From Marsupella aquatica (lineage: Eukaryota > Plantae > Marchantiophyta): DNA of 64,000 nt. Below, one piece after another: positions 29,152-45,021 of this stretch. Position 1 is the first letter of the stretch; each line of letters begins with the position of its first letter. Position numbers and translations under genes: made by a program. Below the pieces are notes generated by a model that searched no databases, was not told the DNA's origin, and saw nothing but the letters and a program-made list of their open reading frames with translations. The DNA lies in NCBI GenBank assembly GCA_973895155.1, contig OZ316899.1, positions 2,811,455 through 2,875,454 of the forward strand, read 5' to 3'.

Positions 29152-29309
29152 TGTTGTGAGGTATAGAACAACTGATACTTCATTCCCTTCCATATCCTTA
29201 CATATAGGCTATCCAATAGCTAGGCGGTTAGACAGTTAGTGTGGTCTAACCTGAGTAGACGTAAACCTAGTTAACCTCATGTATGGTCTGGTTAACTCGG
29301 GTTACAACA
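29152..29309 (-). repeat. Element D 5' LTR (158 bp)
   Basis: TGTTG...CAACA terminal inverted repeats; lies between the PBS and the Gypsy F RT sequence. Confidence 0.8.
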
Positions 29310-31603
29310 AAAGGGTGTTTGTACAAGGAGAGGGATCAAACACTTAGAGGAGATGGCCTAAGACAGTTTGTGTGGGAGCACTTACAAGATGTGGGAGCTA
29401 TTCTACAAAGACTCAAGGAAGTAGGAGTAACTCTATCTGGAGAGAAGTCAGCTTTCGGGTTACAAGAGATCATGGTAGTAGGGCAAGTTTGTGGCCCTTA
29501 TGGAAGAAGACCATGTGAAGCAAAAGTGGATGCCATCAAGGACATGGAGAACTACAGAACTACCTCAGAGGTAAGGAGATTTCTTGGGGCCTGCATCTTC
29601 TACAGAATATGGATACCACATTTTGCTCACATTGCATAACCTCTCTATGATCTTCTAAGGAAGAATGTGAGGTTTGTATGGAGTGTAGGCCATACAAAGG
29701 CTATGCAACAATTGAAAGAAGCTTTGACTAGCTCACCGGTGTTACAACCTCTGAAGTACAATGGTATTGACCCAATAATTGTGACCATTGACTCAAGTCC
29801 TCATGCATCTGGATGGCAGTTGGACAAGATGAGGAAGGACAAAGGTTTGCCGCACGGTTTGGGGCAAAAATATTTACAGAAAGACAGAGGCATTATCCTC
29901 AAGTAAAATGAGAGTTGTGGAGTGCGAAGGTAGCACTTCGCCAAGAAAGAGACTATTTGATAGGAGCAAATGTAATACTAGAGACAGATTGCCTACCCTT
30001 GTTGGGAATGATAGCCAATTGTGATACTCCAGATATTGCAATGCTTCGATTGATAGCATTCATCAGAATGTTTAATCCTGAGTTAAAGCACATTGCTGGG
30101 AGAGATAATCCAGTAGCTTATATGCTTTCCCGAGCTCGCTATAGGGATGAGGAGGACCAGGGAATGTGCCTTCATAGTACATATGGAGAAGATGAAGGGG
30201 AATTGAGGTTTGAAGAGGAAGCTTATTCTGGGGAATTGTTGCAGATAAGACGTTACCTTGCCACGTTGCAGAAAGATTCAACATGGAGTAAGCAAGACTT
30301 CAACAGAATTTGGAAGAAGTCTTACCAATTCATGATTAGAGATGGATCCCTTTGGAAGCATCCAAAGAAGAAGGGGCACATACTTCTAAGAGTCATTGGT
30401 AGAGAAGAAGAGAAACACAAAATTTTACATGACTTGCATGATTCTGACGTGGCAGGACATAAGGGGAGAGAAGCTACTTATGAAAGGATTTGAAGGCTAT
30501 ATTGGTGGCCAGGGATGTATGTAGATGTAAGTAAGTATGTGGAAACTTGCAAAGTGTGTCAACTCTACTCGAAGGTGAAGCATAGAGATGGACTAAAACC
30601 CACGTACCCTCTTTCCCTACACTACCAATCGGTTGTAGGTGTGGTACACATGCCGAGGGGAGTAAGAGGAGCCAAGTATCTTGTCTTGGCTATTGAGGAC
30701 CTCTCCTCCTACATTGAAGGTAGAGCCTTGACAACAAATAAGACCGAGGCGATATGCAGATTTGTATTAGAGGACATCATTGCAAGGTATGGATGCTTTG
30801 ATCGCATGAGGGCAGACAGAGGGGAGCTCAATGCAGAGGAAGCAGTTGCATTTTTCAGGAAGTTTAGGGTGAATCTCAAATTGACAACTGCTTACAATCC
30901 TAAAGGTAATGGCAAGAGTGAGAGGGGACACCAACCAATTGTGAATGCCTTGATTAAGGCATGCAAGGGGAGAATCTCACTTTGGCCAAATTTCCTTCCC
31001 CTAGCACTTATGGCACATAGAACAACTTGCACATCGGTAACAGGATATGCACCTTCAGAGTTGATCAATGGTCAACTTCCACTCATGCCAATAGAAGAAG
31101 ACATTAATAGTTGGAGGGCAATAGAGTGGGAGGATGATATATCTCAAGAGGATTTGATTCTTCGTCGCATAGAGCAGTTTGATCACACTCCTACAAAGAT
31201 CCAAGGCGCCATTAAACAATTGAAGCAAAAGAGAATGGCTAACAAATCCCGCTTTGACAAGACCCATCGATTGTGACCCAAGACAATCCAAGAAGAGGAT
31301 TGGGTCTTAGTCTCTGAAGGCGGTCTCAGACAAGATCACTCCTCGATCAAGAAATTTGCACATCGTTGGAGGGGCCCATTTGTGGTAGTTACTACTCACC
31401 CAAATTCCACTTACACTCTTTGTGAGTTGGATGGAGCAATTCATCGTGTGCCTTATGCAGGAAAAAGGGTGAAAATATTCAAAAGGCGAACATGTTTTTT
31501 AGAGGAAGAGGCCATCGATTCAGACCAAGAAGAGGAAGAGGAAGAAGAAGAAGAAGAAGATGAAGAACCTGAAAAGCAAGAGGAAGAAATATTCATTGAG
31601 TGA
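29310..31603 (+). pseudogene. pol: Element F pol remnant (RT end, RNase H, integrase, acidic tail)
   Basis: Fragments 29283-29639, 29667-29906, 29915-30493, 30515-31276 and 31382-31603, with stops and frameshifts. Confidence 0.88.
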
Positions 31604-31610
31604 AGTAAGA

Positions 31611-31826
31611 GATTAGTAGGGGTGACTATTAAGTGTGGTGCAGACTACAAGATGCACAAGATTAGTAGGGGTGAGTATTAAGTGTGGTGCAGACTACAAG
31701 ATGCACAAGATTAGTAGGAGTGACTATTAAGTATGGTGCAGACTACAAGATGCACAAGATTAGTAGGGATGACTATTAAGTGTGGTGCAGACCGGAGGCT
31801 GCATAGGTTTAGTAGGGGTGATATAT
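31611..31826 (+). repeat. 49-bp tandem repeat (4 units plus a partial), each unit containing the PPT-like motif
   Basis: Unit GATTAGTAGGGGTGACTATTAAGTGTGGTGCAGACTACAAGATGCACAA at 31611, 31660, 31709 and 31758. Confidence 0.95.
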
Positions 31827-32329
31827 TGTGGGGATTCTTTGTTTAATAAGTTCTTCCTAAGTATAGCTTAGTAGTATAGGATAGTAGTTTGAATTCTTAT
31901 ATTATATGCAGTCTATAGTGTGCATGCTATAGTGCACGACCTACAGTGTGCATGCTACAGTGTATGATCTACAGTGTGCATGCTACAGTGTACGGTCTAT
32001 AGAGTGCATGCTACAGTACACGGTGTACAGTATGCATGCTACAGTGTAAGATCTAAAGTGTGCATGCTACAGTGCAAGACCTACAGTGTGCATGCTACAG
32101 TGTACGATCTACAGTGTGCATGCTATAGTATACTGCCTACAGTTGCTCCACTCATGTAACTATAGTACTAGCACACTTACTTGCCTTGGATGTGTGACAC
32201 ATGGCTTTCATCCGTGTACCATGCTTGATCCGTGTGCTTGAGGTGTGAGCACTATAAATAAAGAGGAGAGGGGCTCTCTTCCCTCACTCCCCATCTTTCA
32301 TCAATTAAGTGTGAAGCCTTAAGAATCCA
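31827..32329 (+). repeat. Putative 3' LTR of element F
   Basis: Follows the PPT, starts with TG, has TATA-like CTATAAATA near 32252 and a partial inverted terminus. The partner LTR is not in the window. Confidence 0.55.
31913..32143. repeat. Minisatellite: 8 x 28 bp higher-order unit of two 14-bp subunits (CTACAGTGTGCATG / CTACAGTGTATGAT)
   Basis: Unit starts at 31913, 31941, 31969 and so on to 32109. Confidence 0.93.
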
Positions 32330-32660: not shown

Positions 32661-33939
32661 AAATAGCTGCATATATATACTTAGAGTTAACTCAATGCAT
32701 AGTATTTATTTGAAATGAATGATCTTTTCGTTGAATGATTCTAGATCTTGTCATTAGAATAAATATTAGTTGGATGGAATATTTGATAGTACGATAATGC
32801 CCAGACCAGTACCTGTTCTTCCTCTCCCTAATCCTTTCCTTATTAGAATTCATGTACTCCAAAAAGAGATAATGCGTCAGAATATGACTTTTCACTAGCA
32901 TTTGCAACTGCGGTGTTAAATTCAATAGAGCCAATTGTATACCCTTATGTAGTTTATGGGCAGGATTGGGTTTGGGGGTATTTACATAAGACAGGAAACA
33001 GGAAAACAGGAAACCCAAAACAGGAACCGATGACAGGAAACAGGAAACCGAATACACCAAACTTAAACCAAAAATACCGGAAACTTTTATGTTGTTAAGC
33101 AAGAACTTGACACCCAAAACGGGGTGTTTAGAAGATTGTAGTCAAGTCCAAAAAAAAGATGTAGAATAGCAACAGGCGCTCGAATACTAAGCCAAGGGGA
33201 ACGGTACATTTGAACCTGGGTTATACTAAAAAGCATAGGCACGCACCAGGCGCTGCCATTGTAATTGTACAGAATGGAGCTCTAAACAAGAAACTTGGGC
33301 GCCTCCGTCGGACCGGTGAAGATACTAGCGCCGGGCGCTAGTTATATCGCTCAGTCAGACGGAGGCCGACGTGATAAATACGACGAAACCACCGGGACCA
33401 TCGGACCAACGTTTAGGGTTTTACATCCAAAAGAGCCAACTCCAACCAATTTGCATAATTGAACGCCACCCCAAAATCCACAAAGTCTTGCGATACAATT
33501 TTTTTTTAGTAAGATGGTAGTGCCAGGCGCTTACAAAAGATCAAAGTGATCTGCATAACCACACCGTAAACGGAAGGTATGAAAGTTTCAAAAAGCTACG
33601 CGCATCCGACGCCTCTCGCTTAAAATGGCCAAACAGTAAACTAGTGCTAGGCACTTCACCAAACTCCACACAAACGATAACCAAAATGGCTACATCTAAC
33701 GACAAGATTTCTAAATTCCAGTCGAGTCCCAACAAAGTCTTCATCACATTCGGAAAAACTTGAGCGCTATGGGCACCATAGTCTTAGAGACCAACGCTAG
33801 CGCCGGGGGCGCTAGTCCGCTCATTAGTCGATGAGCCACATTCATCGTTCACTCCAGCATTAGATCAGGCTCTATCTGGAACGAAACCGTGCTCACGGTT
33901 TCTCACAAATACCATCGACGGAACTCGCTCATCACCGGT

Positions 33940-34811
33940 TCAGGGAAACACGCCAGGAATGGTCATGTTCTGGAAATCAACACGGCCAAGTTCTTCCTGT
34001 TTCCTCATCTCATCCTCCCGAGTTGGACTGTAAGGAGGAGGTGGCCAGTGAATCGTAAACCGCTCTGCAAATCTCCTAGGCGGAGAATCCCTCAGCCATG
34101 GGATCAGATTGTCACCAAGACTAATGGCTTCGTCTTGGGAGAGATTAAAACGGTTGTGGAAAGCACTTGTCTCCGACCATTCAGGCTGCTCAGTTTCTGG
34201 AACCAAGCCCTCCTCCAAAATGATTGTGGTGTGTCTTTGAAAAGAGGCCATGGAGATTCTCCTCGGGTTATTCATGGTAAGACACCTCTAGGCAGTGGAT
34301 GGCAGATTCAAAGATATAGTTGTCAATACGACCCCGGTCAGCGAAAGAGCTTGAAGATTATCGAAAGTGGGAACAGAAACCACTAAAGCAATAGCGAAAC
34401 TAGGCAGTCGGGATTTAATCTCCCAAGTATTATAAGCAAACCCGTTCGACCTGGATATGCCCATCGTAATGAGGGAGGGGGTGGACGTTGCATCCTCAAA
34501 GTCCCCAAACTACCCTTCAACATGGAACGGTCACTCCCATCTCACATGATAGTTGCGATGTTTATCTTCGTCTCCATTCAAAAATGGTCGACCAAAACCA
34601 GTATTGGAATCCCGAAATGTTTCTGGCATCCAAAGTCCCGTTGTGACATGAAGTGGCCGTTTGGATGAGAAAAATCCGGTACCAGCTCACATGCAAGTCG
34701 TGATAGGCCAAACGAACTTAGAACGGGACAAAAGATTACCTCAAAACTTCCACTGACGTCATCCAGAGCGTACGAGAGAATCATTGTAAGATTGCCTTGA
34801 CCGTCATACAA
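33940..34811 (-). pseudogene. Degenerate ORF of unknown function (~290 codons)
   Basis: ORFs 34578-34811 and 33940-34275 can be joined by a frame switch near 34580 and a few TGA/TAG stops. Begins right after the palindrome at 34818. No recognisable motif. Confidence 0.45.
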
Positions 34812-35613
34812 TTATAGTAGCGCCCGGCGCTAATATTACAGTATTAAAATGTTTACGTTAATAACAGAAGGAACAAACAAAACAGTTGTCGCTGACATGT
34901 GGAAAACACTTAACGGACAATGTTTCCGAAATATGTTTTAGTAGCGCCAGGCGCTAGCATAATTCAATTGAGAAATAGACCCAACATAAACGGAGTTGCA
35001 GGTCAATTGTTTCCGACCACTCGGAATGTCCAGTCTTAGGAAGTAAACTGACCCTCAAAAATGGACAAAACGAAATTGAAAAATATGCGGGTATATGATC
35101 ATGGACATTAAATTATGGTAGCACCATGCGCTACCATAAAAACATTGCAATATAGAGAACATAATAGAATAAAGATACACCACAAAAGTATCCAATGTAA
35201 CGAATATATTTGAATAAATGATGTTTGCAGGTTACATAACAGTAGCGCCCGGTGCTAGTATAACTTCAGTGTATATAAATCCCAAAATACCCTTTCGAGG
35301 CAAATCAATCTGAGAATTCTGATTCACTTGACTCGGACCTATCGGTGGATTCTGCCTCCATGTCTAAAAATTCGTTCTCGGCCATATCATCAACACATCG
35401 ACTACGAATAAATTTTCTATCAGACCCTCTCCTTAATCTCAAACCTTTATGCTCCCAATGGAGGGTCCGCACACTATCAGCTCGTCTAGCAATATTCTCA
35501 GCATAGGAAGGTAGTACAAATGGTTTCTCGGGAGTTTTAATATATCGCCTAGCTACTTTCCTTCTGAGTTGGAAACGCCGGCGAAGATTCCAGTCTGACC
35601 TGAGGACGAGAAG

Positions 35614-35623
35614 TTTAGGGTTT
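35614..35623 (-). promoter_or_regulatory. Telo-box (AAACCCTAAA); second copy at 33412-33421
   Basis: Exact plant telo-box in intergenic spacers, same orientation as the cassette genes. A ~100-codon open frame without ATG follows at about 35600-35308. Confidence 0.35.
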
Positions 35624-35733
35624 TATGTCAACGCCAAGAATATTTTAAAAAATGAAAAAAACCAGAAATCGAAGAGAGAATAAGGTAATCTACTAAAAAA
35701 CCGGGTTTGCTTAAGAGCTTACTCGGAAGCTTC

Positions 35734-38700
35734 TTACTCAGAAGAGTCTCCGCTGTCACTCCCTCCATTAGATCCTGGATCTTCTCCGGTAAGAGACACT
35801 TTGGGACTGTTAGGATCCTCCTCTTCTTCCCCCTCTTCTGTCTCATCCTCATCTTCAGAATCAAAATTTAAGACAGACTTCAGTTTGTCTCTCTTTCGTT
35901 TTGAAATTGAAGACTTTGGAGGGGCTTTGGGCTCAGACTCTTTTGGAGTAAGAAGATCCAGAAATACCTTAGAAGCGGTTTCAACAAACTCCTTCCTATT
36001 CTCGAGTCCAATTACAAATTGACCACAATATCACCTGCAACAAATGTACTCCCCAAACCTACAGCCCAATCCAGAACAATATCTCCTGGACACGTAATTA
36101 GTTCCAACACAGACTGCATGAATCCTGGATGTAGTCTGGCATTCCCGACAAATTCAAGCTCTGGAGTTGTATCAACCTTTGCGAAGGGAAGTCCAATCAG
36201 ATTTGTAATGGAAGGATCCTCTGTTTTTGAAAGGGGTTTGAACTTAGGATCTTTTGGGACTTTCACCTTGGATGATATCCGCAAAAATACATCCAAACGT
36301 AAAGTGAATACCTGAAAAGGGAACAAAATAGAGGAAGGACCCTTAGATTACAATAGCGTCGGGCGCTAGCAAATAATCCACAAAATCATGTTGAATAGTT
36401 TACCTGAAATAAGGTCAAATAAAAAAAGAAAGTAATAGATAATATGAATAGCGCCGGGCGCTAGCAAAAGGATCAACAAAATTACCTATAAATCAGACTT
36501 TGCTTTGTACATTGGGAACCCCATGACGACATTATGTGTACATAGACACTGGAATTTCTTGGACTCCTGACAAGCGGAGATGACCTGCAAAATTTGATCA
36601 TACTCCCCCGTATGGAGGATCGCAATAATTCCGTCATCCGACAAAAAAGGATCCATTTCCCGGAAAAAGGATCGGGCTAGGGTACAGTCGGGGACGTTCC
36701 ATTTAGGGACCTTTCTGTCAAGCAAAGTCGGTTTTAGTCCAATTGGCAAGTAAATAAAACCAGCGTCAACACCAAAAGGTCTTTGCTTCCCACCCCTCAC
36801 CACTCCTTTCAGCCGGCATCCAGATTTGATCAGGTCTTTCCCCCACTTTTCGACATCATTTACCCATTCTGGCTTCTCCTCCTTATTAAACACACTGTCC
36901 ACAAGTTCACTGACACTAGTCTCAACGAAACAATGACGAGACGACTTGGCTTTAAAATCCCCAACATCACGTTGGAGCCCAGTGGCAGCCTGAGAATCGC
37001 GTTCTGATTGTCCAGCATCTCGAGTCCTTCTGCTTTTCTTTTTTGTACTCGTCGCATCGACTGGGACAATCAATTTCCCAGAATTAACTGGTGTAAGTGG
37101 ATCTGGCAAAGCGCCAGTATTTTCTTCTGAAGCTTCTGGAGTAACCTTTGTATCATCTGTGCCATCTGCATCTGACTTCTTTTGACCTATGAACATATTG
37201 CAAAGAATGTGGGATTAGGGCCTTCAAGCAAACACTGATGAAGATTGAATCACAAGAATGGCAGCGCCGGGCGCTAGCAAACATTTGAAAAAAATATTGA
37301 AAACTTACGTTTCTTTCCGGATCGCGTGGAGGCACTTGGCACTGCAGTGTCTATTTTAACTTTCCCTCGTGGCTTGCGGCTCCTATCTACTTGGACAACT
37401 ACTGTCTCACAGATTGTCTGTAACTCCGTAGAAGATTTATTGACGTCGCTAAGGAGACCTTGCTTCATCTCAGAAACAATGTTGGGAAGGATCTGCGACT
37501 TTGCAAGTTTCAGAAACCAATCCTTCTCCACTTCATCAAAGGGTGAATCCCACTTGTCTGTGTCAAGGTACCATGGGCAGTGAATTCTTTCCCACTCGGA
37601 CATTTCCCTTGGGGGTAGTTTACCCTCGGTAGGATACATCGAGTATAAGTCACAAACAAGATCTCCCTCCTTTACAGTAATCCAGTTGTGAAATGCGGCT
37701 GGATACGCCCAAAGAGCATCTGGGGAATGAATTTCCATCCAAATGTAGAAACGATACAAATACCTCTTGGCCCTCTTCTGATTTTTCTTGGTAGATACCT
37801 CTTTATCAGGTATTTTGATGGCCACATGGTGTTGAAGAACTTTGCCTTCACAAGATCCCCATACCTTCGGAATTCACTTGAAATTACTTCAATCAGATTT
37901 TCTACCGAGTCACACCCTGACTGGGCAAGCCTATCAACCGGTAGCATTTCAATCGCTGCGGAAATTGCCGAGTGTAGCATCCCAATTGCAATTCCCTCAA
38001 CGGTATTCCATGTTTTCCATGTGTGGCACCACTGCTTCACTGGATCATCGTTCACACTCGAAGGGTGGAAGAATTGTTTTCTCAACTCTGGAGTACAGTG
38101 AGCAACGAGCAATGTACACCTCAATTTTGGATCAAGCGCCGAAATTGCAGTGAAGAGTCTGGCACGGTCCATAGTGCAAACAACCGAATCTGGTTTTTTC
38201 TCTCGCTTGTTTTTCTCTGTCAAAACATACATCTCTGAACAGGTACCTAGAAAATTTTCAAACTCAGGACTAAGAAGAGGAGTGATTTTGGACATTTTCG
38301 TGGACCAATCTTTAGTAGATTCTTTCAACATGAGCGATTGCCGCTTTGTGATGTCATCAGCCGACCAAGGATTACCTTGACTTGCTGCGAGTGCCATGTC
38401 CATCTTGAACTGGTTAGTGTAAGCTTTAATTTTGTTTTCGCATAAAATATAGACTAGAGCTTCCAGAGGCATTTTTCTTGTGTACCAAGAATATTTTCGA
38501 GTCTTCTGTTTGATATACTCAAACTTTGCATAATTGGCGCTGTCAATGATAGACTTGTAGTGCTCTAGATCGTGAGAAAGAATCCTCCGGATTCTGTCTG
38601 CGTCAAGGATCCACGACGGTTCAACAACGGCATGCCCTAACCTGCAATACGCCAGGTTTTCAATTATTAGCGTCGGGCGCTAGCTTAACTTAAACACTCA

Positions 38701-39571
38701 ATTAGCCTATAAACACTGTATTATTCTATAAACACTCCATAAACACTATATTTATGTAATAACCAAGTATTGCGGAAATTGTTAATTACAAGCTAGGGCA
38801 AAAAATGTACTGGTTCACAGTGTGCATAGCCGCCTCAATCTGAATTTGCAAAGCTTTGTCACCCTTGAAAATTGTGCAGAGAACTCTGGGATGATACTTG
38901 ACGTTGTCAGGATTTTCCTTTGTGACCATCGTCCACGAGTAAAGTCGATGAGTCCCGTCAAACATTGAGAACATTTTGTCTTTCAAGATCATAAAGGCAG
39001 GATCTGCCTCGCACTCCAACTCAAACTTCTCGTTCTCAGCAACCCAAATTGCATCCCAACTCTCCTTGATCTCTTCAGTGCAGATTTGCTCCACACCATC
39101 CGAATCGGTCGGCTGTACAAAAAACCGCATTCCTATCCTGGGATTGTATCCACTACTTCGGAATGAGTCTTTCAATTTCTCAATTGACGCACTCTCCTTC
39201 TGTAACATCCGAACAGCCTCCATGTGGACCAGGCGACAAAGCGGAATCCGTGGAGGTTCCTTCTCATTCCCCCGAAAATCTTTCCCAAACGACATAATAT
39301 GTTTGGAGATGACTTCATCCATTCCAAGTCCTACCTCGTTGCCCTCTCCCAAAGCGTAATCGGTCATGCCATCAGTCTCCATTCTGCCCCTTCTTGGCTT
39401 CTGGCTCGGGAGTGTTGTGTTTGACAAAGGAATCGCTCCGCTTGATCTTGTAACACGACGCGAATAGAATGCCCCAGAGAATGAAGATTGTGTACTCTCG
39501 CAATGACCCTAATCTCCCTCCGGAACCATGGTATACCCTCTTGGAGAGCTTGGAGCGCTTGAAGGTTGCAT
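35734..39571 (-). pseudogene. ParB/Srx-like plus beta-class N4/N6 DNA-methyltransferase-like fusion gene; 4 exons, ~1125 codons, 2 nonsense and 2 frameshift lesions
   Basis: Model: ATG 39571; exons 39571-38811, 38641-37309, 37186-36486, 36311-35734; GT-AG introns with consistent phases (2, 1, 0). TAG at 39509-39511 and 36486-36488; 1-nt deletions near 37825 and 36025. ParB-like IPLCRL...R...IEKLKDSF...G...FDGTHRL. MTase-like PGDIVLDWAVGLGST..AG and CGQFVIGLE. Confidence 0.8.
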
Positions 39572-40017
39572 CGTGGAGCCCCAAAGTTTGCGAAGGTGCT
39601 TGTACGACACAGAGCCAGTGTCTATTCTCACGCTCTGAACAAATTACCATACAAAAAGAACAAGCAGGAAACCTTTAAAACTTGGGTGGTTTACATCATG
39701 GGAGGTAGATCGATGCGGAAGAAAAGGATCTCACTCACCAATCATGACAAGGACAAGTGGCCAATACTGTTTAGAATGAGTATATGTAACGCCTCTTTTT
39801 AACTGGGGTAAGGGAGGAGCGATGATCCGTAGGCTATTCTTAAGGAAGTCAACTGCAAAAAGCGTGAAACAATGAGTACGTTCATGCACTTTACCGTTAG
39901 ATATAACCATTGGGATAATACAAGTCATTCCTTTCAATACTAGCGCCAGGCGCTAGCATTCAAAAACCACTAAAATAACATCATTAACACTGATGTCAGC
40001 CATGATATTATGTCAGC

Positions 40018-40296
40018 TGTTGTAGTGTATACTCCTTGGCCTTGGGCTCGTTTGTTCACGAGGTGTCGGGTCAACCAATCGTAAAGTGTATGATCATAAA
40101 TGAATGAAATCCTTTCTCCTTAATTCCTTCGTGTAAATCAAGATTTCTGTTATGTATGAATGCATGTATGAGTCTTGTGTGCAAGTATCAACGTCGGGCC
40201 GAACACGTTATGTCAACTGTGCACGGGGTGCCGGATACGGGTACGGGGTTGCGAGCCCGGGTTGAGCCTTTGTACTAATGGATCCGGATCGAAGGC
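40018..40296 (+). repeat. LTR fragment G, left part (E-family LTR 3' end) split by element C
   Basis: Reverse complement resembles 25201-25480 (e.g. GCCTTCGATCCGGAT, GCTCAACCCGGGCTCGCAACC, CACCCCGTGCAC). Confidence 0.75.
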
Positions 40297-43200
40297 TGTG
40301 ATGCCTAGCCAGGAATCACTGGGCTAGTTTAAGGGGGAAAGGGAAGTGTACCCTAGAAACACCTTAGTATAGTTACATAAATAAGGAAAATATAAACAAT
40401 TAAGGGTGACTATGGAACCCGAGCCGAGGCCGGAAGTAAGGACGCCAGGGGAGAGAACACGATTAGGGTTAGGGCACGCTAAGTGCCAGCGGCTAGGGGT
40501 AACCAACGGGAGGGAGAACCAGAGGAGGAGAGGGGTAAGGACCGCTCGCGAGGAATAGTAGCTCATTTGCAAGCACGAACTGAGCAGGCGACTACAGGCG
40601 GCCAACTACTGTCAACTGCTTAGGCAAGCGCTCAGCGTGGGGACAGATACCGACTATCAACTCAAGAAGGGTATGAGAAACGTCAATCAAGCGGCACATT
40701 TTTGGGGATGCCTGTTCGAACGGGCAACTGGGTACATTGGGACTTACGAGGACGCAGAATCGGAGAGAGTAGCTCGAGAATGGCTGGAGCTCGCCCGATT
40801 GTGGGAGCTGCAAAAAGCTACCTTCTTAGGAGGAGAACTCATCAAGGCTGAATTCCTGTGGACACCTACTGGCAACGAGCTAGACGACCTGCTGTTTTGC
40901 GAAGACAGAGTTGTCGGCATCCGAGAAGCCATCAAACGCTGCAACGACATACACTGGGAGTTGAAGGGTAGCACGGAGGGGTGGACAAAGGCAACCGTGC
41001 TAGGAGAGACATCCACGACAGCCGAGATGAAGAGGAAGGGGAACAACAATGAAGAGGCCACCCCGGCAAAAAGAACGCGGTCGGCGGCACCAAAGAAGCC
41101 AGCAAAACAACAAAGCAGGAGGCAAAGAGAAGCCGAGGAGGAGGAGGTCGACCCCATCAATGCCATTCCAACAAACGATGACACCTGGAAAGGCTGGGCG
41201 GCGACCCTACCGGAGGAAGTGCAATTACACTTTGCACGGGAGGAGGATGCATGCTTTACAGCCATGCAGACCAAGAAGTACCAAGGCTTCATGGCCGGAT
41301 CCGGCTTGGAAGCCTTCGTAAGATTACCATGGCTGAAGCCGGAGGTGCCGGACTCAGACTTGTTAGAATTCGTGGGATCATGGGAACCCGAGACCAATTC
41401 CACGAGGGTGTATGGGAAGGATTTCTATCTCACTCCCCGGGTGATTGCTGAAGTGTTTGGCTTGCCGATGGGTAATAAGACCAAGGTTGATACCAGGAAG
41501 ACCTTACCTGACAAGGAGTTTCGGTCGATCCCAGGACCATCAACAAAGAATGGCTTCTTCCGGAACACCTGCACCAACCCGCACATCGGAGAGATGATCG
41601 ATTTCTTGCGGGTGACCATGCACTGTAACTTGCCGAGGGCAGAGATCGGCAAGGCTCAGGTCTACCTGGCAGAAAGGCCAGACCCAAGCCGGGATTACAA
41701 CGGGTACCTCCTCAACCAACTGAAGAAGATCTTGAAGGAGGAACAGCAGGTGATCGGCGTGGGAAGTGTGTCCCGGCTTGGCTATCACATGCCACTGTTG
41801 TGCCGGTATGCCAGAAGTCAAATCTTTGCCCCAGTACTTCCCCTATCGACAAGAGCACCGGAGGAGGTCCCGGAGCAGAGGCCGACACCAGAGAAGCCCA
41901 ACCAGCCCGACAGTCCGACAATCGAGCAGGTGTTTAGACCAAGGAAAGAAGACTTGCCAATGCAGCAACCAGGCATGCAGAATCTGCTGAAATTGCTGGA
42001 GAAGGAAAGGAGAAGGGTTCCGGCAATGGCAACAAAACCGGCACCGATACAGGACGCTGCCCGAGAAGCCGATCTAAGCCGGCTTACAAGGGAAAACCCC
42101 TTTACTGGAGTCAAGGAGAGAGGGAGGCCGAAACACGAGCCGGGAGTTCAGATGTATGTAGGAGCCTCAAGTCCCAAAGCCGAGGAAAAGCAGGCCGTAG
42201 CTCCCAGCCACGACAAGGAGAACAAGAGATCAACACGGAAGCCGGAGGAGGAACCAAGACCGGTGAGAGGTGAAGCCGTGTTCACAACAAAACCAGGAGA
42301 ACAGCGGGAGAAGCCGGTAGTCCAAGCCGAGGAGGAGGCGGTAGAGGACTACAGCAATGATGACTTCGGCTACGGGTCGGATCATCATGTTCCAGGAGTA
42401 AGGACCTGTGGTCAGTTCATCCCCACGCTCCCAAGAGTAGTTCGAGGAGACCCAAGCCAGCAGAGCAGCCCCGAGTCTCCCCCACCAGATGTCGCTCCCC
42501 CGAGCTTTGACGGCATAAAACAGACGGCGCAGGAATTTCAGGAGCGAATCAGGGAGGAAGAGGAGGCAGCCCTGGCTAGGGAAAAGGATTTACGAGGAGG
42601 AGAATGGCCAGAGGACATCAGGCGGCTTGCAGAAAAACAAAGCAACCCTCTTGCCACCGTAGAAGAAATCCGCAAGACGGCTTGGGAGCAGAGGCCGCGG
42701 TGGTTGATGCCGATGACTTCTAGTTACTCCACCTATGCTAAGGATAGAGCCATGGAGTACGGGGAAATGTGTGGAGTGCTGGCGCTCAGCATCTTTGGGG
42801 AGGAGTTGGAGCAAGGACCCTTTTTCCAGAGGGAGATGTTGGAGAAGCGCCAATTAGAAGAAGCGGTGGCTTTGGAAAGAAGCAAGAAGGACGAGGTCAT
42901 CCGTCGGCTTAGGGCAAGAGAAGCCAAAATCAAAGACCTGGGGGCGGCCAAGAAAGCCCAAGATGAGTTGCGGATTAAGCGGCATGAGCTAAATATCATG
43001 CAAGGCCAATTGGATACCGCACAGTCTGATAATCGGATTATCGAGAATAAACTGACTCAAACCCAAGGAGAGTTGGCCGATGCGATCAAGGAGCGGGAGA
43101 AGTGGAAGCGAAAGCTGAGGGATGCAGAGGAGGCACACATAACGGCCAACAACCGGGCCATGGCGGAGACCCAGAGAAGGGAAAGGGCATTGAAGGGGGA

Positions 43201-45021
43201 GCTCGAGGTTATCCGCGGAGCCCTTGAGAAGAAGGAGGCCGAGTTAGGGAAATCCTATCAAGGGATTATTGCGCTGCAGCAGGAGCTTGCGTCCCTGACG
43301 GCCAGCTTCAAAGCCGACCTGCGTGAGAAGGACAATATGCTCGATCAGACTTACGCCAAGATGAACCAGATGGAGTGTGTCATCATTGCAGAGCTCGACA
43401 AGGAGTTAAGAGCGACCCAGGAGGAGAGAGCTACGTTTAAAAAGGAATTGGAGGAAGCCCAGAAGGAGCTGGAGGAGGCGCGCAAGGACCTGGACAAAGT
43501 GCAGGAGGAGTTGGAGGAAAGCACGCGGAAGCTAGAGAACTTACAACGACGAGCCGACAACCAAACGGAGCGGTTGAAGAAACAAGCCGCAGTATTTAAG
43601 TGCTTGGCTTCATCAGGGCCAACTCAAATTGAGGCCACTAAGTTACCAGGAGTGGTACTGGCTGAAGGACAAACCGCGCCATTTGCACCAGTGCTGGAAG
43701 TAAGTGAGAAGGGGAAGGGGCCAGCTGCCAAACCAGAAAAGAAGAAGAAACGGAAACCTTCAGGGTCAAGGAGTAATACGGCTCCACAGGCCGTGGTGAC
43801 CATGGAGATAAACCCAGCACCGACCTCAGGCAAGATTACGGCAGAGGATCCAACTACCCTAGAAGGGGATGACAAAGCCAAGGCCAGGATACTCGGTAAA
43901 GCCGAGGTACCCAATCTGCCACTTAAGTGTGCAGGGGAGGCCGTAGCCGAGGTTGATGTTGAAGCCGATACCGTAGCCGATGCCGGGGGTGGACCCAGTC
44001 AGGCTGATGGAGAGTTGACTGAGTCAAGGACAGGTAATCTATCAGAGAACGAACCTATGGCAGTGGCTGAGGAGGAAGCATTGGGGGCGTCCACTGAGGG
44101 ACAGACACCGCTGCCATGACGGTGGTGGAGGGCCGCTCCTTTCAAGGAGGGCGGACGTGGAGGGAGGAGGCGTGAGTGGGCAGGGCGGGCTCAGATCTCT
44201 AAGTTTAGGATTAGGATCAGGACCAGGAGGCGGCCCTGACACTTAGCTTAGTGGGATTGCGGTTCCACTGGTAAGAGCAACACTTGTACTCCTGCCTCGC
44301 TGTACATAGGTAGATTCAGTTAGGTAGATTAGGCTTACGCTGCAAAGAATTAGGCGGATCCACTACCAGGATAAGTACCTGGGCAGTGGGGAGCTCAGAG
44401 CCTCTTCTTTAGCAAGTTTTTAGTTGCACCAGCCGGGCTGGGATCAAGCAGTAAGAGAAGCTCTCGGTTAGTCATACAATGACCCTTGTGTATATTCATG
44501 TTTCCTCATGCCTAAGAGCTGAATAGAGTTGGCCTCACGGCTTAGTTCGCAGAGCTTGTGTATGAGATGTACTGTTTGTATGGCAAGTGCATGGTATGAC
44601 TCAATCAGAAGGAGTCATTTTGCTATTTGTGTGTCGCATTAACTTGTGTGAAGAGTGCCCACATCAACTAATAGATGAAGGAAAGTAAGCAAGGGAGTGA
44701 GAGTTGGATGTGTCGAGCTGAAAGAGGTCTTAGCGGCTTAACCAAGCCTATTGGGGATCATTCCGGCGGCGGAATCCAAATATACCTAACAAGAAGGAGG
44801 GGAAGACAAGGGAAGGCCTAGATTAGGCCAGCTACGTATCTCATGACCCGATGAAGGATCTGTCCAGTATATGTGTGTAAAATGTTAATAGTAGTAGTAG
44901 AGGGAGGTTAGCAGCGTCCCATGCCACTAAGCCGTGAAAACGGCCTCGCCAAGCGTGAAACTGCGGGAATCGGCTTGTGAAGGGGGTTTCTGGGGTTTAG
45001 GGAGCCATGGGACGCACCACA
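40297..45021 (+). repeat. Element C 5' LTR (4725 bp)
   Basis: Colinear with 51215-52001 plus 58890-62854 and with 16972-21637; followed by the PBS. Confidence 0.96.
40637..44119 (+). CDS. Intact LTR-embedded ORF (1160 codons): conserved plant-transposon-type domain, Pro/Glu-rich region, long coiled coil
   Basis: Uninterrupted frame inside the 5' LTR; first ATG near 40672. The ancestral ATG at 40392 is cut off by TAG-TAG (TGG-TGG in B). Confidence 0.88.
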   Translation: MGTDTDYQLKKGMRNVNQAAHFWGCLFERATGYIGTYEDAESERVAREWLELARLWELQKATFLGGELIKAEFLWTPTGNELDDLLFCEDRVVGIREAIKRCNDIHWELKGSTEGWTKATVLGETSTTAEMKRKGNNNEEATPAKRTRSAAPKKPAKQQSRRQREAEEEEVDPINAIPTNDDTWKGWAATLPEEVQLHFAREEDACFTAMQTKKYQGFMAGSGLEAFVRLPWLKPEVPDSDLLEFVGSWEPETNSTRVYGKDFYLTPRVIAEVFGLPMGNKTKVDTRKTLPDKEFRSIPGPSTKNGFFRNTCTNPHIGEMIDFLRVTMHCNLPRAEIGKAQVYLAERPDPSRDYNGYLLNQLKKILKEEQQVIGVGSVSRLGYHMPLLCRYARSQIFAPVLPLSTRAPEEVPEQRPTPEKPNQPDSPTIEQVFRPRKEDLPMQQPGMQNLLKLLEKERRRVPAMATKPAPIQDAAREADLSRLTRENPFTGVKERGRPKHEPGVQMYVGASSPKAEEKQAVAPSHDKENKRSTRKPEEEPRPVRGEAVFTTKPGEQREKPVVQAEEEAVEDYSNDDFGYGSDHHVPGVRTCGQFIPTLPRVVRGDPSQQSSPESPPPDVAPPSFDGIKQTAQEFQERIREEEEAALAREKDLRGGEWPEDIRRLAEKQSNPLATVEEIRKTAWEQRPRWLMPMTSSYSTYAKDRAMEYGEMCGVLALSIFGEELEQGPFFQREMLEKRQLEEAVALERSKKDEVIRRLRAREAKIKDLGAAKKAQDELRIKRHELNIMQGQLDTAQSDNRIIENKLTQTQGELADAIKEREKWKRKLRDAEEAHITANNRAMAETQRRERALKGELEVIRGALEKKEAELGKSYQGIIALQQELASLTASFKADLREKDNMLDQTYAKMNQMECVIIAELDKELRATQEERATFKKELEEAQKELEEARKDLDKVQEELEESTRKLENLQRRADNQTERLKKQAAVFKCLASSGPTQIEATKLPGVVLAEGQTAPFAPVLEVSEKGKGPAAKPEKKKKRKPSGSRSNTAPQAVVTMEINPAPTSGKITAEDPTTLEGDDKAKARILGKAEVPNLPLKCAGEAVAEVDVEADTVADAGGGPSQADGELTESRTGNLSENEPMAVAEEEALGASTEGQTPLP

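Follow-up and report, generated by a model that had tools for sequence, protein, structure and literature searches.

The minus-strand gene at 39571–35734 in a 64-kb stretch of Marsupella aquatica contig OZ316899.1 (hereafter the window) was analysed and is very probably a pseudogenised copy of an accessory gene belonging to a multi-copy land-plant DNA transposon. The intact protein is ~1100–1200 amino acids (aa) long and comprises a ParB/sulfiredoxin (Srx) domain, a middle region with a linker, a methylase-like domain and an acidic tail. By its sequence, the methylase-like domain keeps the S-adenosylmethionine (SAM)-binding motif I and has lost the (D/S/N)PP(Y/F/W) motif.

Exon–intron structure and decay of the window copy

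The minus strand of 39571–35734 consisted of long open pieces whose frame changed between pieces. In a scripted rebuild, the segments 39571–38811, 38641–37309, 37186–36486 and 36311–35734 were joined with one N inserted per frameshift, giving 1125 codons with the terminal TAA at 35736–35734. All three introns were gt..ag and their phases were consistent (CA/G at intron 1, C/GT at intron 2 and phase 0 at intron 3). This structure of four minus-strand GT-AG exons and 1125 codons, interrupted by two deletions of 1 nucleotide (nt) and two TAG codons, had been put forward in the original prediction, which was made from the letters alone, and was reproduced exactly. The motifs quoted there were likewise present, namely DGTHR at 38959–38945, PGDIVLDWAVGLGST at about 36090–36046 and CGQFVIGLE after the frameshift. 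The features of the gene and its surroundings are given below, where P and L numbers denote homologous proteins and loci.

39941–39955, no strand: upstream palindrome TAGCGCCAGGCGCTA, ~370 nt 5' of the first ATG
38811–39571, minus strand: exon 1, N-terminal extension and ParB/Srx domain (homologues P0001–P0004, E=1e-45 to 1e-90)
38815–39343, minus strand: ParB/Srx-fold domain, 176 aa (AlphaFold2 model and fold matches; DGTHR as above)
38642–38810, minus strand: intron 1, gt..ag, 169 nt, with a palindrome at 38668–38682 (position kept in L002–L004, L006 and Riccia L007)
37309–38641, minus strand: exon 2, conserved middle region with a 1-nt deletion between 37809 and 37808 (collinear with P0158 residues 325–661)
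37187–37308, minus strand: intron 2, gt..ag, 122 nt, with a palindrome at 37262–37276 (no intron here in Riccia P0158)
36486–37186, minus strand: exon 3, basic/acidic linker and first half of the methylase-like domain (alignment with Riccia copies and P0005; first CcrM stretch)
36752–36738, minus strand: YLPIG at the motif IV position (alignment with Riccia copies and P0005)
36312–36485, minus strand: intron 3, 174 nt, two ~95-nt tandem halves (Riccia intron at the same place, L007 13301–13379)
35734–36311, minus strand: exon 4, motif I, 1-nt deletion at 36029/36028, CGQFVIGLE, acidic tail and TAA (methylase matches)
35386–35541, minus strand: candidate extra coding segment TPEKPFVLPSYAENIARR...VDDMAE, inside the open frame 35622–35308
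33167–35257, no strand: downstream non-coding field with eight intact or decayed copies of TAGCGCC-N-GGCGCTA (33167, 33326, 33518, 33798, 34818, 34942, 35119 and 35243)

The two frameshifts, of 1 nt each, were located at 37808/37809 and 36028/36029. Other copies, on contigs from four public runs, had one extra base at both sites (an extra G behind 37808), and both frameshifts are therefore deletions private to the window copy or its close kin. The in-frame TAG codons were codon 21 (39511–39509) and codon 932 (36488–36486). Since the N-terminal extension that holds the first of these is conserved in P0001, this TAG is a true nonsense mutation. The second is the final codon of exon 3, and homologue P0005 continues there with Q and then V; judging from the P0005 protein, the original codon was probably a CAG preceding the gt donor. 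The window copy is a dead, truncated, pseudogenised fragment with no functional consequence of its own.

Homologues, copy number and selection

The window protein, with its interruptions masked by X, was compared with P0158, an intact protein of 1207 aa from Riccia sorocarpa. Residues 77–614 aligned to 150–661 (E=9e-64), and a second, collinear block aligned residues 727–1071 to 839–1191 (E=2e-23). The exons accordingly form one gene, as had been claimed, and no homologue assigned them to unrelated genes. Chance open reading frames (ORFs) were ruled out by the same collinearity. Homologues of exon 1 were also found on short metagenomic and Logan contigs at 57–73% identity, on which exon-2-like coding sequence followed an intron of variable length at the identical position. 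The positions of introns 1 and 3 were common to the window gene and Riccia, and at the position of intron 2 Riccia had no intron. A recent transfer from a bacterium or phage was considered and rejected, as the liverwort and window-lineage genes have intron positions in common and ferns also carry the family; the prokaryotic derivation put forward in the original prediction, if correct, would not be recent.

A profile search with the ParB domain matched 337 representative proteins; the named sources among 20 matches that were looked up were Riccia sorocarpa, Adiantum capillus-veneris and A. nelumboides. In Riccia, 26 gene models were found on at least 7 sequence records, many of them fragmentary. 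In public runs of the window's organisms, 332 to 1393 contigs at 90–99% identity covered the window stretch, and a metagenome scan gave two short loci only. Liverwort, fern and window genomes all contain the family in multiple copies. Two annotated gene models joined family pieces to unrelated sequences, P0123 (Adiantum nelumboides) to a retrotransposon gag and P0185 (L009 13013–17351) to a peroxidase; both are probably annotation chimeras in repeat-rich DNA.

The window gene and L002 had identities of 0.82, 0.86 and 0.46 at the first, second and third codon positions, respectively, with a non-synonymous divergence (dN) of 0.17–0.19. Synonymous divergence (dS) was saturated, so that the codon-position identities were used in place of dN/dS. 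Judged by these values, the family evolved under purifying selection, and for most of its past it encoded a working protein.

The N-terminal domain has a predicted ParB/Srx fold

An AlphaFold2 model of the N-terminal domain based on an alignment of 67 sequences had a predicted local distance difference test score (pLDDT) of 93.7; with a six-sequence alignment the pLDDT was 41. When the model was searched against the PDB with Foldseek, ~45 of the top 47 matches were ParB (bound to cytidine diphosphate, CDP, or cytidine triphosphate, CTP), Noc, KorB, PadC, Srx or SbnI. ParB/Srx proteins also dominated the top matches in AFDB clusters, BFVD and the ESM Atlas. The E-values were modest, at 0.025 for the PDB and 0.002 for AFDB. 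The VIA aligner superposed the model on Caulobacter ParB with a Z of 7.9 and a root-mean-square deviation of 2.5 Å over 96 residues.

Across the 67 sequences, G130, N131 and H132 were nearly invariant, and the window copy reads FDGTHRL at this place. In the model, the G-N-H(-R) motif comes after strand 125–129 and opens helix 131–143. On this reading of the model, it would be equivalent to the GERR of ParB and the GCHR of sulfiredoxin, at the strand-to-helix turn.

Sequence searches gave a different picture. The comparison with ParBc (PF02195) suggested as a check in the original prediction came out negative, neither the window piece nor any of the 67 family members giving a match at E≤1. The only weak Pfam matches among the 67 members were three to DndB (0.066) and three to DUF1015. 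Searches of Pfam, NCBIfam and PDB sequences with the ParB-like domain returned nothing significant; the best matches, galectin-8 (E=0.17) and eL24 (0.43), were taken as chance. The predicted structure supports the proposed ParB/Srx fold, whereas membership of Pfam ParBc by sequence was without support.

Several uncharacterised AFDB proteins (A7RT40, A0A7M7N1A7, A0A8B6HLU8, A0A1X7UY26 and A0A388JYA0) matched the domain as well as bacterial ParB did, and one AFDB match of the uncharacterised set bears the name eIF5B. These matches hint at a wider set of ParB/Srx-domain proteins that go without the ParB name.

Between the ParB/Srx and methylase-like domains lie a conserved middle region of ~350 aa and a low-complexity linker, together ~600 aa. 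For these two parts, no match was found in Pfam, NCBIfam, a PDB profile search or the Atlas features.

The C-terminal domain is related to beta-class DNA methylases

To the C-terminal domain, the original prediction had assigned the motifs of beta-class N4-cytosine (N4C)/N6-adenine (N6A) methyltransferases, and this assignment was borne out. The family profile matched CcrM (6pbd) in the PDB with E=3.7e-6 in two collinear stretches (profile positions 117–176 and 271–317) and DpnA (5hek) with E=5e-4, and phage DNA-methylase PHROGs were matched down to 4e-9. Pfam scores lay near the threshold. The exon 4 piece of the window alone matched N6_N4_Mtase with E=0.062 (13.7 bits), and the Riccia proteins P0158, P0156 and P0159 scored 23.7–26.2 bits against PF01555, just under the gathering threshold of 26.7. 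Precomputed PF01555 matches were present on four Riccia copies. Significance against methylase models was confined to the C-terminal ~60 aa.

The permuted order of the beta class was found, with a remnant of the catalytic lobe followed by motif I near the C-terminus. The motif I sequence is GDIVIDFAGGWGAT in the Riccia copies, and the window copy has GDIVLDWAVGLGST. At the position of motif IV, the Riccia copies have DLPTG, DLPSG, DMPSG or DLSSR, and the window lineage has YLPIG or YLPTG. The canonical (D/S/N)PP(Y/F/W) was not found at the aligned position, its first proline and its aromatic residue being gone; the register relative to DPPY is a reading of the alignment, as the CcrM match starts just after the motif IV position. 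On this sequence evidence, the domain shares its ancestry with the N6A/N4C DNA methylases of the beta class. Neither of the two outcomes that the original prediction had named as refuting it was seen. Because motif IV is not DPPY or SPPY, catalysis is doubtful, and so is ‘DNA marking’. Of the earlier description as a DNA-binding or DNA-marking gene, the homology stands and the ‘marking’ part is in doubt.

Riccia P0156, P0158, P0159, P0163–P0165 and others carry the automatic UniRef name ‘Trimethylguanosine synthase’. This identity was rejected, since it is PF01555 and phage DNA methylases that the domain matches, and motif I lies at the C-terminus; the name looks wrong. The degenerate catalytic motif warns against giving the family either annotation, that of active DNA methylases or that of ‘trimethylguanosine synthase’.

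Palindromes in the non-coding DNA of the element

Seven matches to GCTAGCGCCCGRCGCT with no more than one mismatch were found, where 0.01 were expected. When decay was allowed, the palindrome TAGCGCC-N-GGCGCTA had 13 copies, all within 33167–39955, and at up to two mismatches none was found elsewhere in the 64 kb. All 13 were non-coding: eight lay downstream of the gene and one upstream, and the other four were intronic, with two in intron 3 and one each in introns 1 and 2. Most of the variant copies included C-to-T or G-to-A changes at CG sites, which would fit a methylated, dead copy.

Each half of intron 3 consists of GTAA, a palindrome (36449–36463 or 36354–36368) and a pyrimidine tract ending in CAG, with a spacing of 95. 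The intron can be described as two intron-like units around a zero-length ‘exon’. In some other copies, the stretch between 36317 and 36450 was replaced.

Palindromes were also found at related loci. L001 (57% aa identity), which aligns in its coding DNA only, nevertheless had the same palindrome upstream and in two copies within intron 1. The palindromes of the Riccia loci differ. In L007, the space between the genes contained nine copies of TTCCGGCGAG-NNN-CTCGCCGGAA, and eight copies of TCCAGCGGA-CNC-CCGCTGGA were found downstream; L008 had 12 copies of CGGCGGA-N-TCCGCCG, and L009 had palindromes of the CCGGCGG and CCAGCGG types. L003 carried GCCAGCG-AAA-CGCTGGC upstream. The Riccia arrays, made up of GC-rich palindromes, comprised 5 to 12 copies; each of the three loci had such arrays downstream of the gene, and arrays also lay between or beside both genes. 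The conserved position together with the lineage-specific sequence suggests cis sites in co-evolution with a protein that reads them. The palindromes are probably binding sites for a protein encoded by the element. An Rfam scan of 33000–40400 gave no known RNA.

The probable carrier element

At three Riccia loci (L007, L008 and L009), the gene was preceded by a divergent pair of ORFs of 417 and 635 aa. Between these loci, identity was 65–69% for the 417-aa product and 41–51% for the 635-aa product. A Cys/His-rich region was seen in the 417-aa ORF, and its C-terminal part includes the segment ...GFMADMAEAGWIAVRNVF. In the Atlas, this ORF had among its neighbours Mutator-like element (MULE) and ZSWIM RNaseH-like transposase clusters at 0.89–0.91, with unnamed eukaryotic clusters scoring higher, at 0.94–0.96. 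With moderate confidence, this ORF is taken to encode a divergent MULE-type transposase.

Comparison with known systems

Genes of this kind have been published as transposon accessory genes pairing ParB-like and methylase domains in brown, red and green algae (PMC12477816; bioRxiv 10.1101/2025.02.11.637652). In Ectocarpus, the element Sola1-1_Ec32 carries a gene of 1104 aa with a ParB-like and an N4C/N6A methylase domain on the strand opposite its transposase (Genome Biol 2025;26:320, PMC12477816), and its protein was proposed to bind and modify its own element (PMC12477816). The likeness extends to the two-domain layout, the size (1104 versus ~1125–1207 aa), probably the carriage on a DNA transposon and, at the Riccia loci, the orientation opposite to the putative transposase. 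The carrier differs, being Sola1 in the alga and MULE-like here; the present host is a land plant, and palindromes in the introns are described here. The algal transposable-element proteins were likened to the present family by description only.

In the red alga Bostrychia, the cargo of Plavaka elements includes PAG2, which combines PF01555 with SET, and PAG3, which combines a ParB-like domain with a 2-oxoglutarate (2OG) oxygenase (Petroll et al. 2025; bioRxiv 10.1101/2025.02.11.637652). The same study described tandem inverted-repeat arrays beside the ParB-like gene and drew an analogy with VANDAL elements (bioRxiv 10.1101/2025.02.11.637652). Shared with the present family are the role as transposon cargo, the association of a ParB-like with a nucleic-acid-modifying domain, the inverted-repeat arrays by the ParB-like gene and a cargo that switches between transposon superfamilies. 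In Plavaka, however, the methylase and the ParB-like domain reside in separate proteins with other partner domains, whereas here they are fused.

The phage and prophage fusions of ParB_N with N6_N4_Mtase, together with CcrM (6pbd) and DpnA (5hek), resemble the present protein in the N-terminal ParB/Srx fold and the C-terminal permuted methylase with motif I. They differ in that the present protein has ~600 aa between the domains, spliceosomal introns, a replaced DPPY and no match to Pfam ParBc.

The VANDAL elements of Arabidopsis, which are MULEs, encode the anti-silencing protein VANC, whose targets are short motifs in the non-coding DNA of the element and whose function was shown experimentally. 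To our knowledge, this is the only experimentally shown case of transposon genes for self-recognition or self-marking, and such genes are rare. The present family shares with it a probable MULE-type element with an accessory protein, and lineage-specific short motifs in non-coding DNA that suggest self-recognition. VANC shows no relationship to the present protein in sequence or fold, the motifs it targets are other than GC-rich palindromes, and its function is demonstrated, whereas that of the present protein is predicted.

In Marchantia, the host genes DN4MT1a/b lie in tandem, are expressed in sperm and have the TSPPY motif (bioRxiv 10.1101/2021.02.12.428880). They share with the present family a relationship to beta-class amino-methyltransferases in a bryophyte; the present family differs in being repeated, linked to a transposable element, fused to ParB and without TSPPY. 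The earlier comparison with the domesticated DN4MT1 and N4CMT does not fit a broken, repeated transposon gene of this kind.

No report of such a gene from land plants was found in the literature searched. The family is a land-plant example of the published algal kind and not a new kind; points of its own are the MULE-like carrier in bryophytes and probably ferns, the degenerate catalytic motif and the palindromes in the introns of the gene. Its occurrence in liverworts, ferns and the window genome extends the algal ParB-plus-methylase cargo to land plants, and the small, defined cis sites make binding and methylation of the own element directly testable.

Possible roles of the accessory protein and the palindromes

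In the mechanism proposed here, the palindromes would be cis sites recognised by an element-encoded protein, most likely a dimer of the ParB-like accessory protein. The protein would load on, bridge or mark the DNA of its own element and would thereby help transposition or counter host silencing, and the methylase-like half would serve as a SAM-binding or DNA-binding module, not as a classical methylase. In its full form, this reading is held tentatively: a self-recognition factor may bind its own palindromes, including the intronic ones, spread from or bridge them as ParB does from parS, and shield the element from silencing or assemble a transposition complex. The methylase fold would then be non-catalytic or perform a novel chemistry, and palindromes and protein would co-evolve, giving rise to mutually exclusive element lineages.

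A number of results weigh against the transposon reading or the self-recognition role. Canonical ParB reads parS through a helix-turn-helix (HTH), and in the region after the ParB/Srx domain no known family was detected, an HTH included. That the accessory protein reads the palindromes is what we infer, and the binding protein is still putative. The loss of DPPY, as read from the alignment, argues against methylation, which is doubtful, and an altered chemistry may apply instead. For the Riccia partner gene, a Pfam search gave no MULE domain and nothing at E≤0.1, the MULE assignment being backed by language-model neighbours only. At the ends of the Riccia elements, inverted motifs were seen with no clear terminal inverted repeat (TIR) or target-site duplication (TSD); an inverted 17-mer in L007, at 2141 and 16019, was without a matching TSD. 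Splice joints were not found at the predicted junctions in the four runs that hold the stretch, which behave like DNA and cover the introns. The ends of the element around the window copy were not found either, nor was any relative of the Riccia divergent ORFs within the 64 kb. Without such a relative, and with a gypsy-type fragment at 29283–31276 to its left, the window copy is accordingly a fragment. The proposal that the gene travels on a plant mobile element gains from its multi-copy state and the MULE-like linkage at three Riccia loci; it is not reflected in the window copy, which has no transposase beside it.

Alternatively, the palindromes may bind the MULE-like transposase, as subterminal repeats do, and the ParB-methylase-like protein may have an unrelated accessory role. 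This is a real possibility, held at well below even confidence. In Riccia, the arrays flank both genes and occur also downstream of the transposase gene (L007 4064–4358 and L008 2852–3840), and the Cys/His-rich N-terminal region of the transposase-like ORF would, on a reading of its sequence, suit sequence-specific binding. Set against this, palindromes accompany ParB-type proteins in bacteria, inverted-repeat arrays also lie beside the ParB-like gene of the red-algal Plavaka, and in the window a fragment devoid of any transposase still has palindromes around its ParB gene.

It is rather unlikely that the protein is an active DNA N6A or N4C methyltransferase, targeted to the palindromes by its ParB-like part to write a self-mark on the transposon. 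The SAM-binding motif I and the acidic strand that follows it are conserved, the family has been under long purifying selection, and the same function was proposed for the algal proteins. The motif IV sequences (DLPTG, DMPSG or DLSSR, and YLPIG or YLPTG), however, lack the first proline and the aromatic residue of established beta-class enzymes, whereas Marchantia DN4MT1 keeps TSPPY, and the significant similarity to methylase models is limited to the C-terminal ~60 aa.

It appears improbable that the palindromes are a tiny mobile or self-duplicating hairpin element, possibly one that creates or lengthens introns. The tandem ~95-nt units of intron 3, each with splice-site-like ends and a palindrome, would suit such an element, as would the lineage-specific intron 2 and the distance of 20–33 nt between palindrome and GTAA in intron 2 and both halves of intron 3. 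The palindromes are, however, equally present in intergenic flanks, no TSDs or shared flanks beyond T-rich sequence were seen, and different palindromes occupy equivalent places in each lineage, which fits co-evolution with a reader protein.

Very improbable is a host gene domesticated from a prokaryotic source, in the manner of DN4MT1 or N4CMT, that lies in repeat DNA by chance and decayed recently: the conserved introns and long-term purifying selection would agree with it, whereas the multi-copy state with many broken or fragmentary copies in Riccia and the window's organisms, the transposase-like linkage at three loci and the lack of the canonical catalytic motif speak against it.

Other features of the region

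Tandem-repeat blocks were present at 31561–32162, with five 49-nt units followed by nine units of 14/28 nt. They sit 3' of the gypsy-type integrase fragment and just left of the palindrome-bearing stretch. On the plus strand, at 40637–44119, an ORF of 1160 aa was found that has a long coiled-coil C-terminal half and matched no Pfam family.

After the main stop, a small conserved segment (..YRLPxYAE....VDDEA.. with an acidic/Ser tail) was seen in L007 (13965–14282) and in the window (35308–35622). The candidate coding segment 35386–35541 gave weak matches to P0169 (E=0.001), the L007 13965–14282 ORF (E=0.002), P0168 and P0165. Some Riccia gene models splice the equivalent of this segment onto the C-terminus, and the small post-stop segment may be an alternative last exon of the gene.

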